Virus record (IMG/VR): IMGVR_UViG_3300027816_000051
Location: 124,001 to 188,000 of that record
DNA: 64,000 nucleotides
Reading direction: 5' to 3' (one strand)
Shown here: positions 4,268 to 58,447 of the stretch, in pieces
Layout of the letters: each line of letters begins with the position of its first letter
Numbering within the stretch: the stretch's first letter is position 1
Notes under the pieces: generated by a model
The model's input: the letters and a program-made list of their open reading frames with translations, nothing else
Told to the model about the DNA's origin: nothing
Database searches by the model: none
Program-made: the position numbers and the translations under genes

Positions 4268-7189
4268 ATGGCTTGTCAATTATATAACGTCACAATAAGT
4301 TCATTGGATACCGGTAATGCCACCGGTAACACTAACCCTGTTAATAATGGTAAGGTGTATGTTGCTTATTACAACTGTAATGGTGTACTTACAACAACAA
4401 GTTTTTCAAATGGTAGTTATACTATTTGTACCGACATACAAAATGGATTACCTAGTTTATATTATTTTAAAAACGATTCTCCATTAACCGCATCGAATAG
4501 TACTGCAAATGATAGTGGTTCACAATGTCAAGAAACCACTTTTTTTGAAAAATGTTGTGAACAAGGAGGCACTATTTATGAAGTACAAAGTGGATTAAAT
4601 TATATAGTAGGTAGTGTATACACTGACAATACGGATTGTTATATTGCGGTTGCGTCGGGCCCTTCAACCGCAACAGTTGACGACACTGGGACGTGGGTTT
4701 CACAACCAAGTTGTACAGCTGGTGAGTGTCCATCATGTCCTTCACCAACCCCGACACCAACTCCAACAGAAACACCCACAGAAACCCCAACTCCAACAGA
4801 AACACCCACAGAAACCCCAACCCCAACACCTTCAGAAACACCCACAGAAACCCCAACCCCAACTCCAACACTTACTAAAACAGTTACACCCACACCAACT
4901 AACACTGTAACACCAACACTATCCCCCACCCCAACACCAACACCATCAATATGTACGGATTGTGTGTGTAAACAAATCATAAGTGAAGATGGAAATACAA
5001 TTACATATTCATATACTGATTGTTATGGTTTGCTTCAAACTTCCGGAACCATCGCACCTTTTGCTACGGTTTATCAATGTGTATGTTTTGACAATCAAAC
5101 AATTACATTCAGTGACCCAACTAATATAGTTGTGAATCCTAATGGTGGTTGTGAGGACTACCAAAATTGTGACTCACTACCGGTCCCAACACCTACATTA
5201 ACTAGTACTCCGACAGTCACACCTACAGTCACTCCTGAACCAACAAGTTCACCAGCTTCAACTGTATCTGTCACACCAACAGTAACACCAACAGTAACAC
5301 CAACAAGTTCGCCGGTTTCAACTGTATCTGTCACACCAACAGTAACTCCTACAAATACAGTTACACCTACAGTCACAACTTCACCTGGCGGTTCACCTAC
5401 ACCAACCAATACATCAACTCCCACAAATACAGTTACACCTACAGTTACTTCATCACCAGGCGATTCACCTACACCCACACCAACTACCTCACCATCAGTA
5501 ACTCCAACCAATACATCAACCCCTACAAATACAGTTACACCTACAGTTACTTCATCACCAGGAGGTTCGCCCACACCAACTACTTCACCATCGGCAACAC
5601 CCTCTAATACACCAAGTGAAACACCTTCAACAACTCCGTCTTTAACACCGACAGTTACACTTACAGTAACATCAACACCGACTCTAACACCTAGCGTTAC
5701 ACCATCAGTTACATCAACACCTGGTGGTTCGCCAACCCCAACACCCACCAACACCCCAACAAAAACCCCTACACCTACTGTTACACCTTCAGGTTGTGTA
5801 AACGATTTGGTCACCCCAAAAGGCGTTAAGATTTCATTTAATTCCGGTTCTAATTATACAAATTGTACGGTCTATACCGGATTAACTTCAACTAACATAA
5901 CAGGTATAACTTCATGTACAAGTATGTCCACAGGAGATATTTGTGATATTACAGGTATAGACCCAACATTAATGGAGATATATGTTAGAATTGATTGTGA
6001 AGGTTGTTGTGAACAAGTTTTTAGAGTTAATTTGGATGATTGTTGTGATAGTTCGTCGACACCGATATCATCACCCACCCCAACAGTAACACCGACTCAG
6101 AGTGCGACTCCTACGAATACACCAACACTTACCCCAACACCAACTGTTAGTAGTACACCATCAACAGGGTATACTTGTAACGATAGCGTTTATGTCCCCT
6201 CGACAGTGAACGGTGTTTCTATAACATCAACATATAGTGGTAGTGTTACCGAAAATACATCTGGATACACGTCATCCTGTGTTGGTGACACTATTGTAAT
6301 GACCGACTATCATAACTTTTTAGGAAATTCAGGACCTTTCTCATATAGATACAATTTTAGTTCACCAGTAAATGATTTAGTTGTTTTTATAACCGGTATG
6401 GGTGGTACTAGTGATGAAGATTTCACATTTACAACAAATACAGGTACCCCCACAATATCTTCACCGTTAAGTTGTTATGTAACAATAACAGGTAACACAA
6501 TTATTGGTGGCTCAACCGCACCACTTTTTGTCAATGGTGGTGGAAAATTCATAATAACAAATTCAACACCATTTATCTCGATGACCATATCAGGTAATGG
6601 TGGTGCCTCAGGTTCTAGGGTGGGTATTTGCTCCGATTCAATCATACCACTTGTAACACCCACACCCACCAATACTTTAACACCAACACCGACCGTAACC
6701 CCAACGAATACTGTAACACCTACTAATACAGTAACTCCAACAATTACAACATCACCCGGTGGTTCGCCCACATCAACACCAACAATAACACCTACTAATA
6801 CAGTTACACCAACTGAAACTGTAACACCAACACCGACCGTAACCCCAACGAATACTGTAACACCTACTAATACAGTTACACCAACTGAAACTGTAACACC
6901 AACACCGACCGTGACTTCTACCAATACAGTAACACCAACAAATACCCCAACACCAACACTCACCCCAACCAGTTCGGCTACTCCATGTGACATACTATGG
7001 GAATTCGATGGAGGAACGACAGGAACAGGAGGTCATACCACATTTAGTTATACTGACTGTACCGGTACCCTTCAATTTATTACTGTTGGGAATGGTACAA
7101 CTGAGACATACTGTGGTTATTTAACACCAACACCTCAAGTTACGAATGATGGTGACGGTACTTTTACAAGCACTGGAACATGTAATTAA
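4268..7189 (+). CDS. 973-aa mucin-like Pro/Thr/Ser-rich protein with several Cys-rich modules; putative virion fibre
   Basis: Four long PT/TVTP tracts separate YYNCNG, YTDCYG, CEGCC and YTDCTG modules. Confidence 0.7.
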   Translation: MACQLYNVTISSLDTGNATGNTNPVNNGKVYVAYYNCNGVLTTTSFSNGSYTICTDIQNGLPSLYYFKNDSPLTASNSTANDSGSQCQETTFFEKCCEQGGTIYEVQSGLNYIVGSVYTDNTDCYIAVASGPSTATVDDTGTWVSQPSCTAGECPSCPSPTPTPTPTETPTETPTPTETPTETPTPTPSETPTETPTPTPTLTKTVTPTPTNTVTPTLSPTPTPTPSICTDCVCKQIISEDGNTITYSYTDCYGLLQTSGTIAPFATVYQCVCFDNQTITFSDPTNIVVNPNGGCEDYQNCDSLPVPTPTLTSTPTVTPTVTPEPTSSPASTVSVTPTVTPTVTPTSSPVSTVSVTPTVTPTNTVTPTVTTSPGGSPTPTNTSTPTNTVTPTVTSSPGDSPTPTPTTSPSVTPTNTSTPTNTVTPTVTSSPGGSPTPTTSPSATPSNTPSETPSTTPSLTPTVTLTVTSTPTLTPSVTPSVTSTPGGSPTPTPTNTPTKTPTPTVTPSGCVNDLVTPKGVKISFNSGSNYTNCTVYTGLTSTNITGITSCTSMSTGDICDITGIDPTLMEIYVRIDCEGCCEQVFRVNLDDCCDSSSTPISSPTPTVTPTQSATPTNTPTLTPTPTVSSTPSTGYTCNDSVYVPSTVNGVSITSTYSGSVTENTSGYTSSCVGDTIVMTDYHNFLGNSGPFSYRYNFSSPVNDLVVFITGMGGTSDEDFTFTTNTGTPTISSPLSCYVTITGNTIIGGSTAPLFVNGGGKFIITNSTPFISMTISGNGGASGSRVGICSDSIIPLVTPTPTNTLTPTPTVTPTNTVTPTNTVTPTITTSPGGSPTSTPTITPTNTVTPTETVTPTPTVTPTNTVTPTNTVTPTETVTPTPTVTSTNTVTPTNTPTPTLTPTSSATPCDILWEFDGGTTGTGGHTTFSYTDCTGTLQFITVGNGTTETYCGYLTPTPQVTNDGDGTFTSTGTCN
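4761..4820 (+). repeat. Exact 30-bp tandem duplication in a PT tract
   Basis: CTCCAACAGAAACACCCACAGAAACCCCAA x2. Confidence 0.85.
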
Positions 7190-17283: not shown

Positions 17284-17676
17284 ATGGACGAAAGACTTTT
17301 AAACGCAAAAGAAAATACAAATAAAATTGCAGGTTTTCTTGCAAAGAACTATAAAACCGTTTTAATGGTTGTGTTCGGGTTGTTCGTTCTGTATTGGATG
17401 ATTTTCATTTTAACACCTCGAGTGGGTATGTCACCTGAAGATAAGGCGAAGATTGATTCTTTGAATGTTGTAATTAATAACATGTATAAAGAACAAGAAA
17501 TGTTAGACGATAAAATCGACAACATCAATAAAGAAATTGGAGAAGTTGATAATAGTATCGATAAAATTAAAAATCAAAAAACAATAGTAAAGGAAGTATA
17601 TCATGAAAAAATTAATCGTGTTTCTAATTTTACTGAGCCAGAGCTTGATAGCTTTTTCTCAGACAGATACAAATAA
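17284..17676 (+). CDS. Membrane-anchored coiled-coil protein (i-spanin-like topology)
   Basis: One N-terminal TM helix then heptad repeats; TATTTAT at 17272-17278. Confidence 0.5.
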   Translation: MDERLLNAKENTNKIAGFLAKNYKTVLMVVFGLFVLYWMIFILTPRVGMSPEDKAKIDSLNVVINNMYKEQEMLDDKIDNINKEIGEVDNSIDKIKNQKTIVKEVYHEKINRVSNFTEPELDSFFSDRYK

Positions 17677-18031
17677 TAAAAATCGAACCCCCGAACCAGT
17701 AAAATGTTTACCGGTTTCTACATTTAAGTCAATTGCTAAAGACTTATTAAGAGGTGATTCTGCGATTGCTGAATTGAAATTATCAAATGAACAAATCACA
17801 AAATTAGAGGAAAAGGTTTCACTGAAAGATAGTGTAATTGTTACCATGCAGAAGAAAGAGGAAAATTATTTAACAATAATTAAATCTCAAGACGAAAAAT
17901 ATCAAATTTTAGAAAATCACACAAAAAATTTAGAATTACAGTTGAAGAAAGAAAAGGTGAAAAATAAGTTCAAAACCATCGTTGGGGGTGGACTTATTGC
18001 AATTTTATCCGTATTTTTAATCGTACAGTAA
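17603..18031 (+). CDS. Secreted coiled-coil protein with C-terminal TM anchor
   Basis: Signal peptide MKKLIVFLILLSQSLIAFS/Q; overlaps the previous gene by 74 nt. Confidence 0.55.
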   Translation: MKKLIVFLILLSQSLIAFSQTDTNNKNRTPEPVKCLPVSTFKSIAKDLLRGDSAIAELKLSNEQITKLEEKVSLKDSVIVTMQKKEENYLTIIKSQDEKYQILENHTKNLELQLKKEKVKNKFKTIVGGGLIAILSVFLIVQ

Positions 18032-19368: not shown

Positions 19369-19656
19369 ATGAAAAATTTTATTCAAAAAAATTTCACAAT
19401 AATCGTTTTGGTTGTTGCACTTTTAGGATTTTTTAAAAGTTGTGGCGACGGAAGAGAACTCTCTAAAATGAGAAAGGAAATTGAGTCAATTAAAGATTCT
19501 ACCTACACCAAAGAAGAATTGGATGTTAGGTTAAGAATTGAAGGATTGAAATCAGAAAAAAGAATGATTCAAGCAACTGATAGAAAAATTTTAGATGTAA
19601 ACCGTCAAACTGAAATTGATAATGAAATAAGCAAGTTGGAAAATAGTGTTAAATGA
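19369..19656 (+). CDS. Small envelope protein, possible lipoprotein, with coiled coil
   Basis: Hydrophobic N-terminus ending FKSCG; TATTTAT at 19351-19357. Confidence 0.5.
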   Translation: MKNFIQKNFTIIVLVVALLGFFKSCGDGRELSKMRKEIESIKDSTYTKEELDVRLRIEGLKSEKRMIQATDRKILDVNRQTEIDNEISKLENSVK

Positions 19657-20762
19657 AAAATTGGATTAATAAAAATTATAAAACATTAATAGTATCTGCG
19701 TTTTTAATACCAATTATAACTGTTGCGTTGGTTTCAATATCACACGTAACTAAATGGTACGGAATTTCAAACCCAATTAGTTGGGCTATCTATTTATCAA
19801 TAGGTATCGAAATTGCCGCATTATCTGCGTTGGCTGCAATATCAGCTGATATGGGTAGAAAAGTATATTTCCCATTTGGTATTGTAACCCTCATTCAATT
19901 TATTGGTAATATTTATTTCGCCTATTCATATATTGATATTACGAGTCAAGCATTTATTTCTTGGGTTGAGTTAGTTTCACCACTTTTAGAATATATTGGT
20001 GTTGACCCTACAGACATGATTGGTCACAAAAGATTTTTAGCGTTTTTCGCTGGAGGTATGTTACCAATCATTTCACTTTCTTTTCTACATATGTTAGTTA
20101 AGTTTACTCAGAGTGAGAAAAATACTGTAGAGGTTGAACAACCAGTGGTAAAAGACGCTCCTGAACCCGTTGGTGAAGAAACACCGGTGGTAGATGCTAA
20201 AGACATTGTTGGTGAAGTCTCTCGAGTTAGAATCTCTCAAGAAGATTTAGATATTTTAGAAAAATTACTTAACAAAACCCCCCAACCAAAAGATGTTGAA
20301 ACTCCTGAGGAAGAAGAGGATAATGACTCATCAGATGTTTTTTTAATTGAGGACCATTTAATTAAAGAAGAACCGGTGGTTGTTAAAGAAACAACTATTA
20401 CTCCTGAACCAATTGTTGAAGAACAACCTGTAATAGTTGAAGAACCAATTGTCACACCTGAACCAACTATTGCACCTGAACCAATTGTTGAAGAACAACC
20501 GATAGTAATTGAAGAAACAACTATTACTCCTGAACCAATTGTTGAAGAACAACCTGTAATAGTTGAAGAACAACCGATAGTAATTGAAGAACCAATTGTT
20601 GAAGAACAACCTGTAATAGTTGAAGAACAACCGATAGTAATTGAAGAACCAATTGTTACACCTGAACCGATTGTTGAGGAAATAATTGAAACACCTGAAC
20701 CGATTGTTGAGGAACCAATACAAGATGAACAACTTCCCATTGAGGAAGAAAAAAAAAATTAG
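19653..20762 (+). CDS. Multi-TM membrane protein with acidic PIVEEQ repeat tail
   Basis: About 4 TM helices in the first ~150 aa; EEQP(V/I)(I/V) repeats; ends EEEKKN at an A10 run. Confidence 0.75.
   Translation: MKNWINKNYKTLIVSAFLIPIITVALVSISHVTKWYGISNPISWAIYLSIGIEIAALSALAAISADMGRKVYFPFGIVTLIQFIGNIYFAYSYIDITSQAFISWVELVSPLLEYIGVDPTDMIGHKRFLAFFAGGMLPIISLSFLHMLVKFTQSEKNTVEVEQPVVKDAPEPVGEETPVVDAKDIVGEVSRVRISQEDLDILEKLLNKTPQPKDVETPEEEEDNDSSDVFLIEDHLIKEEPVVVKETTITPEPIVEEQPVIVEEPIVTPEPTIAPEPIVEEQPIVIEETTITPEPIVEEQPVIVEEQPIVIEEPIVEEQPVIVEEQPIVIEEPIVTPEPIVEEIIETPEPIVEEPIQDEQLPIEEEKKN
20532..20657 (+). repeat. Exact 57-bp in-frame tandem duplication plus partial third copy
   Basis: 20532-20588 is identical to 20589-20645. 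Confidence 0.85.
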
Positions 20763-20911
20763 AAGAGTCCCCACAACAGGAGGAATCGTTGGAAAACTTT
20801 GGTTTGGACAATGGGGAAATAAATAATACAGAAGACAACGACATTTCTTCTGTTATCAGTAAAAGGTTAACTAGAAATGTTGGAAATACACAACGTAGAA
20901 GGTTTAGATGA
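20759..20911 (+). other. -1 frame continuation (50 aa) of 19653..20762
   Basis: Open -1 frame after GAA AAA AAA AAT TAG reads LEESPQQEESLENFGLDNGEINNTEDNDISSVISKRLTRNVGNTQRRRFR*. Confidence 0.55.
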
Positions 20912-21482
20912 TAAAACTTTAAATGTTGTTCGTCGCAGAACGAAAAAAACCCAAATATTACTGTACGACACTAATAGACGTGCGGACGATTTCATTAATA
21001 AATTAAAGTACAGGAAGTGTGGTAAATACGACGAAATACCACACTTTATTGTCACTAAATTAGGTACAATCTACCAACTTTTCGATACCAACTATTATTC
21101 AAATACATTTGACGAACCTTATATTGACAAACAATTTATTAAAATTGCGGTTGAAAATTTAGGATGGTTAAGTAAAAATACCGTAACAGGTTTCATGCAT
21201 AATTGGATTGGAGACCCTTACAGATGTGAACCTTTCGTTAGAAATTGGAGAAACCATTATTTTTGGGATAGGTATAATGATGACCAAGTATTATCAATTT
21301 CATCATTGTGTGAACATATATGTGAATCCCACGGTATACCAAAAAATATAGTACCTTCTCAGGGATATCTTGAAAGCGCTATTAAATTTAATGGTGTAGT
21401 GTGTAAATCTAATTTCTCAAATATTTATACAGATATAAACCCATCATTTAATTTTAGACTAATTTTTAAAAATGAACAATAG
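20877..21482 (+). CDS. Amidase_2 (T7 lysozyme-like) fold protein, apparently lacking Zn ligands
   Basis: PHFIVTKLGTIYQL, IAVENLGW and TDINPSF pattern; the usual HHT and GH His positions read YDT and PSQ. Confidence 0.6.
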   Translation: MLEIHNVEGLDDKTLNVVRRRTKKTQILLYDTNRRADDFINKLKYRKCGKYDEIPHFIVTKLGTIYQLFDTNYYSNTFDEPYIDKQFIKIAVENLGWLSKNTVTGFMHNWIGDPYRCEPFVRNWRNHYFWDRYNDDQVLSISSLCEHICESHGIPKNIVPSQGYLESAIKFNGVVCKSNFSNIYTDINPSFNFRLIFKNEQ

Positions 21483-22759: not shown

Positions 22760-24085
22760 ATGAAAAAGAATATATCAAATATCATTTCGGAGTCATTATT
22801 TGACGAAGTAAAAAGAACCATATTAAAAGAAAATAAAAAATCTCAAGATATGTTTCAAATTACTTGCGAGGGAGAACCCGTTGAAACATTTGAATCCGAA
22901 GAAATTGCAATGCAACATTTGGATATTTATAAAAAGAAACATCCTAAAAAGGAGTTCATAATCGAAAAAGTAAAATATAATTCACCAACTGAAATGATTG
23001 ATAAATTAGACCAGATGGGAGAAGAATTAGAAGAAAATAAAGAAACCACAAAAATGAAAAAAATTAAAGTATCGAGCATGGCAGAAGCCATTTTATCCGC
23101 TAAAGAAAAAGGTCTAAAAGAAATTAAATTTAACGGAAAAGTACATAATGTTGAAGAATCATGGAAACAACTTGAAGAAGAGGAAGGTGTTTGTGATGAG
23201 TGTGGACAAGGTTATATGGAAGAAGAAACAAATGTGGAGGAATCAAGCGCGTTTGTTTTGGCTGCTGATAAAGCGAGAGATGCTGGTAAAAAAGAATTCG
23301 AATTCCCTAAAGGAAGTGGTAAAATGCATAAAGTAACAATCACTAAAGATATTGATACAAATGAAGGTGAAATGGGTACGTGTAGTGAGTGTGGTTCACC
23401 CATGAATGAGGAAGGAATGTGTTCAGAGTGTGGTACTGGTATGTATGAATCTAAGAAATCGGTTCTTAGACTTACTGAAAGTGAAATGGTTTCTTTGATT
23501 AAAAAAATGGTAATTGATTCAAAAAAAAATCTAAGTGAGGCGGTACCCGGTATTGCGGTAACTAAGAAAGCTCAGAGTGGTTCTAAAAAAGAAAATGACG
23601 ACGCAATTAAAGATGTTCAGAAAAAACTGAAAAAAGCATCAACATTTGATGGTAATGATAATCCTGAGTTTCCAAAACAAGTTGGTAAAGGTGAAAAAAT
23701 GGCGGTAAACCCAACTGAGAAACAAGAAGAGTATATTGATGATAATATGAAGGGTGGTACCCTTTTAGATTTAAATTATGATTTTGAACCATCAGAATCA
23801 TTCAAAAAAAGATTAAAAATGGCATTAGAAGGTGACTCAAAAATGGGTAACTCACAAAATGCTGCTAACGTTATAAAAACAAAAACAGGAGAGAGATTAA
23901 GTAAATCGGCTGAAAGAAAAAAAGAAAAAGAGAAAGACGCACCTGAAGCATTCCATGGAGCAAGAGGAGTTCAACCTTTAAAAGTAAAGAGTGTGAATGA
24001 ATCTAAAACTACAATGACTTCAATTGTGAATGAGGAAATCTCGAGAATGAAAAAAATCATCGGATACAACGAAAGTACTCAGTAA
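22760..24085 (+). CDS. Charged, Zn-ribbon-containing putative head-internal or scaffold-like protein
   Basis: CDECG, CSECG x2; LTESEMVSLIKK and VNEEISRMKKII helices; TATTTAT at 22746-22752. Confidence 0.55.
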   Translation: MKKNISNIISESLFDEVKRTILKENKKSQDMFQITCEGEPVETFESEEIAMQHLDIYKKKHPKKEFIIEKVKYNSPTEMIDKLDQMGEELEENKETTKMKKIKVSSMAEAILSAKEKGLKEIKFNGKVHNVEESWKQLEEEEGVCDECGQGYMEEETNVEESSAFVLAADKARDAGKKEFEFPKGSGKMHKVTITKDIDTNEGEMGTCSECGSPMNEEGMCSECGTGMYESKKSVLRLTESEMVSLIKKMVIDSKKNLSEAVPGIAVTKKAQSGSKKENDDAIKDVQKKLKKASTFDGNDNPEFPKQVGKGEKMAVNPTEKQEEYIDDNMKGGTLLDLNYDFEPSESFKKRLKMALEGDSKMGNSQNAANVIKTKTGERLSKSAERKKEKEKDAPEAFHGARGVQPLKVKSVNESKTTMTSIVNEEISRMKKIIGYNESTQ

Positions 24086-57118: not shown

Positions 57119-58447
57119 ATGAAAAAACCCACACTACAAGAAGAATTACAACGAATCCATGAAATTACCTACGGTAAATCAATGGTAAATGAAAATTTTA
57201 TCGATGATTTATTGGGTAAAATTGGGTTAGGTAAAAAAGACGAAAAAAAAATAGACGACCCCAAAAAGGCGGACTTAGTTTCACCTGACGTTGCAGAATT
57301 TTATAAGACATTAGAAGATACCGCAGCTCAGGGTGGGTTATCAGAACAACCAAGAGGTTCTATGGAATATCAAAAAGGTGTCGAAACTATGCAAATTGGT
57401 TTAATACTCTTGGGTTATGAGTTACCTAAATTTGGTGTTGATGGTTTATTTGGTCCTGAAACCGCAAGTGCTGTTAGAAAATTCAAATCAGATAATTCTG
57501 TAATCAAAGAAAGTGCCGATTCATTAAGAGATAAATTAGATGATTTAGGTTACACCGAAAAAGGTAATGAGTTAACCAGTGGTGGTTCTATTAATGACAA
57601 ACTCACAGATATTGTTAGTCAAATTCTTGACAAGTACAGTCAAAGTAATCCTGATGTTGAGGTTACCATAACCGCAGGTAACGATAAATTCCACCATAAT
57701 TTAAATTACGTAAGTCAACACACCAAAGGAAATGCAATTGATTTGGTTTTAAATCCATATAATTCAAAAAACGCTTCCGATTTTATAAAATTACTCAACT
57801 CAACAAAAAGTAGTGATGGTAATTTTTCATACATAGATGAATACACCAATCCAACCAAAGCCGCAACTGGTGGTCATTTTCATTTACAATATGGTGGTAA
57901 ATCATCTTCTAGTAGTGGTACTTCTGAAAATGCCACACCTGAAATGTTAAATAAGTTATTGGAATTATTAAAAGCTAAAGGTGTTAAATCCGAAGAGTTA
58001 AAACAATACCTTGACCAAGCGGCTAAAAATTCACAAATCAATGTTGACGGTTTAACGGACATCAATTTTTATAAAAAACTACTTGAAAATTTAGGTGCAC
58101 CCGAAAGTGAGGAAAACTTAAAATTCTTATACGCTTGGAGACAGTCAGAAGGTTCGGGTGGAAAATATAATCCATTTAATACCACATGGGATTTACCGGG
58201 TTCCACTAACGCAAATAGTGTTGGTGTTAAAAATTACAAATCTTTAGAAGACGGTATGAAAGCAACCATCAAAACATTGAGAAATGGTCTTTATACTTGT
58301 ATTGTTGATGGTTTGGTAAATGATATTGGTGCTGCGGAAATTGCTAAGTGTGAATCACTTAAGACTTGGGGTACTGGTACTTTGGTTGCCAAAGTTGTAG
58401 ATGGTTACGAAAGAGGTGCCAGTCCAAAAATCAAATCTTTAGCGTAA
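57119..58447 (+). CDS. Multi-domain peptidoglycan hydrolase: PG-binding, M15-like peptidase and lysozyme-like domains
   Basis: GVDGLFGPETASAVRKF; SQHTKGNAID...HFH; AWRQSEG...NPFNTT...YKSLEDG. Confidence 0.7.
   Translation: MKKPTLQEELQRIHEITYGKSMVNENFIDDLLGKIGLGKKDEKKIDDPKKADLVSPDVAEFYKTLEDTAAQGGLSEQPRGSMEYQKGVETMQIGLILLGYELPKFGVDGLFGPETASAVRKFKSDNSVIKESADSLRDKLDDLGYTEKGNELTSGGSINDKLTDIVSQILDKYSQSNPDVEVTITAGNDKFHHNLNYVSQHTKGNAIDLVLNPYNSKNASDFIKLLNSTKSSDGNFSYIDEYTNPTKAATGGHFHLQYGGKSSSSSGTSENATPEMLNKLLELLKAKGVKSEELKQYLDQAAKNSQINVDGLTDINFYKKLLENLGAPESEENLKFLYAWRQSEGSGGKYNPFNTTWDLPGSTNANSVGVKNYKSLEDGMKATIKTLRNGLYTCIVDGLVNDIGAAEIAKCESLKTWGTGTLVAKVVDGYERGASPKIKSLA

Follow-up and report, generated by a model that had tools for sequence, protein, structure and literature searches.

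Does a gene that appears to stop directly after a run of ten A's encode one protein or two? The question is raised by a locus in a 155.7-kb IMG/VR virus record (IMGVR_UViG_3300027816_000051; ~50% complete, GC ~31%), of which we analyzed a stretch of 64,000 nucleotides, referred to here as the window. The original prediction, made from the sequence alone, was that a programmed −1 frameshift or transcriptional slippage at this A10 run gives two isoforms of a membrane protein, one of them with an added basic tail. We found every detail of the sequence description to be correct, and the interpretation is supported by comparison with related phage loci, although no isoform has been observed directly. 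The features of the locus are as follows.

19653..20762 (+), the zero-frame ORF, encoding the short isoform (369 aa): a predicted N-terminal helical membrane domain (about residues 1-160), then an acidic Glu/Pro/Val/Ile-rich repeat linker ending ...EEEKKN.
20388..20714 (+), tandem repeats (periods 18-75 nt, e.g., 57 nt) encoding the PEPIVEEQPVIVEE-type linker.
20733..20748 (+), an RNA hairpin, CUUCC-CAUUGA-GGAAG, abutting the 5' end of the A run; a proposed stimulator of slippage.
20749..20758 (+), the A10 run, the slippage or shift site.
20760..20762 (+), the TAG stop codon of the zero frame.
20759..20911 (+), the −1 frame extension, 50 codons plus TGA; added to the short form it gives a predicted 419-aa long isoform with the junction ...EEKKK-LEESPQ and the basic end KRLTRNVGNTQRRRFR.
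20877..21482 (+), the downstream gene (201 aa), N-acetylmuramoyl-L-alanine amidase-like (Pfam PF01510, Amidase_2; E 5.4e-07, 30.4 bits against a cut-off of 26), whose first 35 nt overlap the end of the extension.

A conserved A10 run with an open −1 frame

The upstream gene ends GAA GAA AAA AAA AAT TAG. The −1 frame is closed by a TGA at 20741-20743, so any shift must occur between 20744 and 20762, that is, on the run. From 20759 to 20908 the −1 frame reads LEESPQQ...RNVGNTQRRRFR, with a TGA at 20909-20911. The next ATG, at 20877, lies 114 nt after the TAG. Taken alone, these features are only weakly significant. A10 runs are not rare in this AT-rich genome, with two seen in 155.7 kb against 3.8 expected from composition, and the other long A runs in the window (A9 at 23521 and at 57243) are ordinary in-frame Lys runs. 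Similarly, a 50-codon open off-frame stretch is only moderately unusual, since the +1 control frame reaches 3-39 codons in 38 relatives.

The significance comes from conservation. A search for related loci returned 80, of which 59 (38 distinct sequences) carry an uninterrupted run, A10 in 55 of the 59 loci and A11 in 4 (four of the 38 distinct sequences), followed by a zero-frame stop 0-4 codons later. In these loci, the longest continuation is always in the −1 frame, at 50-151 codons, and the −1 frame is closed 3-27 codons upstream of the run. The zero-frame stop is TAG or TAA, sometimes in tandem, and the continuation is in another frame, so stop-codon reassignment does not explain the arrangement. 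Of the 120 nearest 90%-identity protein clusters, drawn from ENA, JGI, NCBI and Logan assemblies, 109 end immediately after the run (...EKKN or ...EKKK) and two are fused; about 28 of the 42 most similar 50%-identity representatives also end right after the run. The family is large, with 643 clusters at 50% identity (E up to 0.001), and has no cultured representative. Indeed, a nucleotide search of GenBank phages found nothing, and a protein search found only one distant uncultured 462-kb phage.

The run length is unlikely to be an assembly error. The window's own sequence recurs with A10 in 12 IMG/VR contigs from 12 different metagenomes. A Logan DNA contig also spans the run with no gap, although that sequencing run may be the window's own sample. 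Assemblers do resolve these lengths: two of the related loci, L019 and L025, each carry two in-frame A10 runs in the same gene, and two others, L082 and L083, carry an in-frame A11. Thus, both tests that could have refuted the original prediction, for an A11 run and for homologs lacking the extension, came out in its favor.

The extension evolves as coding sequence in the −1 frame. The extensions are very divergent (mean identity 23%), yet they share the motifs DxLYWE and NPNQVIYDLENNKTIIP, both far from the amidase overlap, and in 37 of 38 (all but locus L044) they end in the same basic motif (RNVGNTQRRRFR; RNVGN(T/S)QRRRFR). Among alignable pairs, single-nucleotide differences fall 82/165/324 on codon positions 1/2/3, and 296 of 571 (52%) are synonymous. 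The end of the basic motif overlaps the start of the amidase-like gene, so part of its conservation may be due to that gene; however, the upstream half of the tail motif, (K/R)(K/R)-hydrophobic-x-(R/Y), lies outside the overlap and is shared with short, unshifted relatives that end ...RLSYLRRDG. Independent initiation is implausible, because 25 of 38 sequences have no ATG in the extension and four have no ATG, GTG or TTG at all.

Naturally fused relatives, which lay beyond the reach of the original prediction, provide a further line of evidence. In a tree of the N-terminal domain, all shifted loci form one clade (support 99/99), four fused forms sit as separate nested tips, and the short unshifted forms lie outside the clade. 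At the DNA level, the fusions that could be checked against shifted relatives carry exactly one extra base at the site: A10 followed by C in L025, L085 and L086, and A11 in L082 and L083. The product expected from a +1-nt mRNA has therefore been repeatedly hard-wired, showing that the long form is functional. Roughly 2% of near clusters and about 15% of deeper clusters are fused, meaning that the shifted state is dominant but not obligatory; a global count of fused forms using the tail as query gave no result, because the extension is too variable. A relative with only 42% N-terminal identity (locus L084) again has A10, TAA and a 66-codon −1 ORF that reaches the next gene.

A hairpin beside the run and the mechanism of the shift

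Three observations favor RNA polymerase slippage over the ribosome. First, the conserved feature is the length and purity of the run, not a heptamer. The run is never shorter than 10 and, in 38 sequences, is never interrupted by a synonymous AAG, although 19.5% of Lys codons elsewhere in these genes are AAG. Second, no 3' stimulatory structure is conserved: the 60 nt downstream have a mean z of −0.5, several lineages fold at 0 to −1.3 kcal/mol, and the sequences cannot be aligned. Third, an RNA hairpin, also not visible to the original prediction, abuts the 5' side of the run.

We compared this hairpin with those at every other anchor position in the same gene's linker. In 27 of 38 lineages, the run-abutting hairpin is in the best 5%, and in 17 it is in the best 1%, with a median percentile of 0.013; the remaining 11 lineages lack a clear hairpin. 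The stems differ between lineages, and include CAUCAUC/GAUGAUG, CUUCGUCA/UGACGAAG and CAAUUAACUC/GAGUUAGUUG. On a covariance-model alignment of 17 sites, 97% of cells pair, compared with 79% in shuffles and 29-80% in slid registers; there are 18 double-change cells against 6.6 expected, and the covariation score of 0.405 (0.122 in shuffles) is reached by 0 of 500 shuffles. Since that alignment is fitted to the structure, the comparison of anchor positions is the independent test. The hairpin is weak or absent at 8 of 9 runs in fused or distant loci.

We therefore favor, with moderate confidence, a programmed recoding site in a gene for a conserved phage inner-membrane protein. Standard decoding stops at the TAG and gives the 369-aa isoform ending in the acidic linker. 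In a fraction of transcripts, RNA polymerase is inferred to slip on the T10 template run and add one A, helped by a nascent-RNA hairpin directly behind the run, an architecture like that of an intrinsic terminator but with A's in place of U's. Normal translation of the A11 mRNA would then continue for 50 more codons, giving the 419-aa isoform with its conserved basic C-terminal motif. The polymerase is probably the host core enzyme, directed by the phage sigma factor, since no phage RNA polymerase was found in the 155.7-kb record and a sigma-70 family gene lies two genes upstream.

Bacterial RNA polymerase slips efficiently on runs of 9 or more A/T, and a 5'-adjacent nascent hairpin enables slippage in Roseiflexus IS630 (PMC5009743). 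However, in that one characterized hairpin-dependent case the hairpin drives a deletion rather than an insertion, and reporter assays found E. coli RNA polymerase to slip more on T runs than on A runs (PMC6260861). Direct RNA evidence is also lacking. Metatranscriptome contigs cover the gene body, the extension and the amidase start, so the region occurs in RNA libraries, but none spans the run: one contig ends at 20737 and another begins at 20753, both at ~2.4-2.5x depth, and the raw-read DNA run that was searched held no reads of this phage. The break in the RNA contigs is compatible with run-length heterogeneity but equally with low coverage.

Alternative explanations for the two frames

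The alternative that survives best, although we consider it unlikely, is that the shift is translational, through −1 programmed ribosomal frameshifting or ribosome sliding on the poly(A) stretch, with the nearby zero-frame stop helping. This would yield the same 419-aa product and is not excluded. An in-phase heptamer (A_AAA_AAA at 20750-20756 in the window) is present in every lineage, whichever phase the run starts in, and some lineages have A_AAA_AAG followed directly by a stop. In addition, ribosomes are reported to slide on iterated AAA codons (PMC4363877), and a GAGGA-like purine tract precedes the run in many lineages. By contrast, a heptamer would suffice for such a shift, yet the run is never shorter than 10 and never carries AAG. 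Moreover, the conserved structure lies 5' of the site, where it would probably attenuate rather than stimulate −1 frameshifting, and the purine tract is simply Glu codons, is too close to act as a −1 stimulator, and is absent in several lineages.

DNA-level phase variation, with the run switching between A10 (off) and A11 (on) during phage replication, is very unlikely. Homopolymers of this length are mutable, a hairpin next to a run could also promote replication slippage, and L082 and L083 carry an in-frame A11 at the homologous site. However, the 12 contigs from 12 metagenomes are all A10, and 109 of the 120 nearest clusters stop after the run, against two fused. The out-of-frame state is kept across a deep clade while the downstream ORF stays under purifying selection, which requires the ORF to be expressed in ordinary infections; rare DNA switching would not provide this. 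Three of the stable fusions examined at the DNA level are A10 plus C rather than A11. Lastly, an artefact or the absence of any recoding is largely refuted: although homopolymers are error-prone, a single 50-codon open frame is not very improbable, and a TTG at 20789 could start a 40-aa ORF, independent assemblers and sources agree on A10, most lineages have no ATG in the extension, the −1 ORF always opens at the run, and fused relatives join exactly these two parts.

Related systems and the biology of the locus

Programmed transcriptional slippage is well documented in a handful of bacterial genes, in IS elements and in RNA viruses, but in literature searches we found no report of it in a gene of a DNA phage or in this protein family. 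The closest analogue is Citrobacter rodentium tssM1, a membrane protein gene interrupted by a stop a few bases after a run of 11 A's, without Shine-Dalgarno-like or 3' structure signals. There, slippage adds A's and gives a short and a full-length variant (20-25% full-length), both of which are needed. In Yersinia pseudotuberculosis tssM3 the arrangement is inverted, with an in-frame run and slippage giving the shorter form (PMC4256274), which parallels the fused phage lineages that keep an in-frame A10. The tssM case is a bacterial secretion-system gene reported in only two species and without a hairpin, whereas the phage gene, for which nothing has been shown experimentally, is conserved over dozens of sampled lineages in a family of several hundred protein clusters, with a covarying 5' hairpin. 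Slippage on an A run also adds C-terminal extensions in Shigella flexneri spa13, mxiE, mxiA and spa33, a different organism and protein family; in spa13, the end of the extension overlaps the start of the next gene, spa32, and affects its expression (PMC5009743). Roseiflexus IS630 shares the terminator-like arrangement of hairpin and slippage motif (Penno et al. 2015, as described in PMC5009743), but there the motif is T5C5, the stem is GC-rich and the result is a specific one-base deletion, while here a long A run could slip unaided, the stems are AU-rich (about −5 to −11 kcal/mol) and an insertion is needed. Finally, Thermus thermophilus dnaX slippage, and −1 ribosomal frameshifting in E. 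coli dnaX and the phage tail chaperone G/GT, give, as inferred here, two products that share an N-terminus, in a set ratio from one gene, using an A-rich shift site.

The function of the membrane protein cannot be read from known families. Its N-terminal domain averages 76% identity over 25 diverse relatives, compared with 74% for the amidase-like protein, and the AlphaFold model is all-helical (pLDDT 78). Proteins with an identical N-terminus have lengths of 308, 327, 350 and 369 aa, indicating repeat copy-number variation in the linker. Searches of Pfam (including a per-member scan) and PHROGs, Foldseek comparisons of the model with PDB and AFDB clusters, and the ESM Atlas gave no convincing family; DUF2637 (PF10935) is only a weak lead (Atlas feature score 0.75 and TM 0.49; Foldseek E about 1; no Pfam hit). 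Synteny is conserved, with ClpP ... the sigma factor, a 95-aa membrane/coiled-coil protein, this gene, and the amidase-like gene. A lysis (holin-like) role is a reasonable guess from position only: there is no holin family hit in Pfam or PHROGs, and the protein seems much larger, and its membrane domain far more conserved, than would be expected of holins. A profile of the amidase-like family against PDB sequences gave no hit, and a complex prediction of the tail with the amidase-like protein returned no answer (score 0.00), which counts neither for nor against binding.

The fixed length of the extension's overlap with the next gene, a third feature beyond the original prediction, hints at a link to the downstream gene. 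In 35 of 37 shift lineages the stop lies 32-35 nt inside the amidase-like gene, whereas in most of the short unshifted relatives the gene's own stop overlaps the amidase start by 8 nt (ATGnnTAA). Only ribosomes on slipped messages would therefore reach the amidase start, suggesting that translation of the amidase-like gene may be coupled to the slippage rate, as for spa13/spa32. A bolder possibility, which we regard as unlikely although not excluded, is that the hairpin-plus-A10 cassette is a dedicated, evolvable device that uses RNA polymerase infidelity to set the ratio of tail-less to tailed isoforms of a lysis-associated membrane protein. Through the fixed overlap it would also gate translation of the amidase-like gene, acting as a transcription-fidelity-based timer or rheostat for late functions, and lineages would tune it by keeping, weakening or fusing the cassette.

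What is new here is the phage protein family, the depth of conservation, the natural fused series, and the pairing of a long A run with a covarying 5' hairpin; the mechanism class is known. The many lineages and natural fusions give a ready natural series for testing how hairpins and run length set slippage efficiency. The arrangement also matters for annotation, since gene callers truncate this protein in most of the assemblies sampled here and leave a 114-417 nt "empty" gap. If the two isoforms and the coupling to the amidase-like gene are real, the locus points to a new way in which phages, here a large family of uncultured freshwater giant phages, regulate a membrane or lysis module.

A10 runs in fused and distant relatives

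Fused relatives keep A10 runs in frame, with two runs each in the related loci L019 (positions 4794 and 5353) and L025 (positions 4767 and 5046), and one each listed for L085 (position 2789) and L086 (position 2858). In those cases that we worked through by eye from their sequence contexts, the addition of one A leads to a stop codon within 0–2 codons. Slippage at these sites would make the truncated isoform, with the ratio inverted, as in Yersinia tssM3. A distant homolog from another assembly (locus L084, positions 1501–2560), with 42% identity in the membrane domain, has the same arrangement of A10 run, stop codon, and −1 ORF (66 codons), reaching the next gene. The device is therefore either very old or arose more than once. 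One shifted lineage with an A11 run (locus L044, positions 4940–5400) has an extension that stops before the amidase-like gene and lacks the basic RNVGN..RR end; this is the only exception among 38 sequences.

There is only one other A10 run in the record, at positions 146337–146346 of the record's contig, outside the window. A 36-codon open stretch ends two codons after this run, and another frame is open for 63 codons downstream. The region looks intergenic or weakly coding. Within the window, metatranscriptome contigs from two runs end and begin on either side of the A run (positions 20737 and 20753), with none crossing it. This could reflect run-length heterogeneity in the RNA, or simply low depth.

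Neighboring genes

The following features lie upstream or downstream of the gene containing the A10 run:

17284–18031, upstream; an overlapping pair of genes for small membrane proteins, one of 130 aa with an N-terminal TM, and one of 142 aa with a signal-like N-terminus and a C-terminal TM
19369–19656, upstream; a 95-aa TM plus coiled-coil protein (phrog_25409)
20877–21482, downstream; the amidase-like protein

The architectures of the small membrane/coiled-coil proteins encoded upstream recall spanin-like or lysis accessory genes, although this resemblance is only suggestive. The amidase-like protein matches only positions 20–113 of the 131-position Amidase_2 profile, and a family profile finds no solved structure by sequence. 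It might be a non-catalytic binding protein.

The acidic linker and the membrane domain

Two regions of the protein lie upstream of the A10 run:

19653–20147; the membrane domain
20388–20714; tandem repeats encoding the acidic linker

The acidic linker is built of tandem repeats with periods of 18–75 nt. Proteins with a 100% identical N-terminal domain and the same C-terminal end have lengths of 308, 327, 350, and 369 aa, indicating that repeat copy number varies between near-identical phage strains. The membrane domain has 54 invariant positions among 25 diverse relatives (e.g., SISHV, QFIGN, and GG-LP-ISL). This is far more conservation than is seen in the rest of the protein, and it suggests that the membrane domain has a specific conserved partner or activity.
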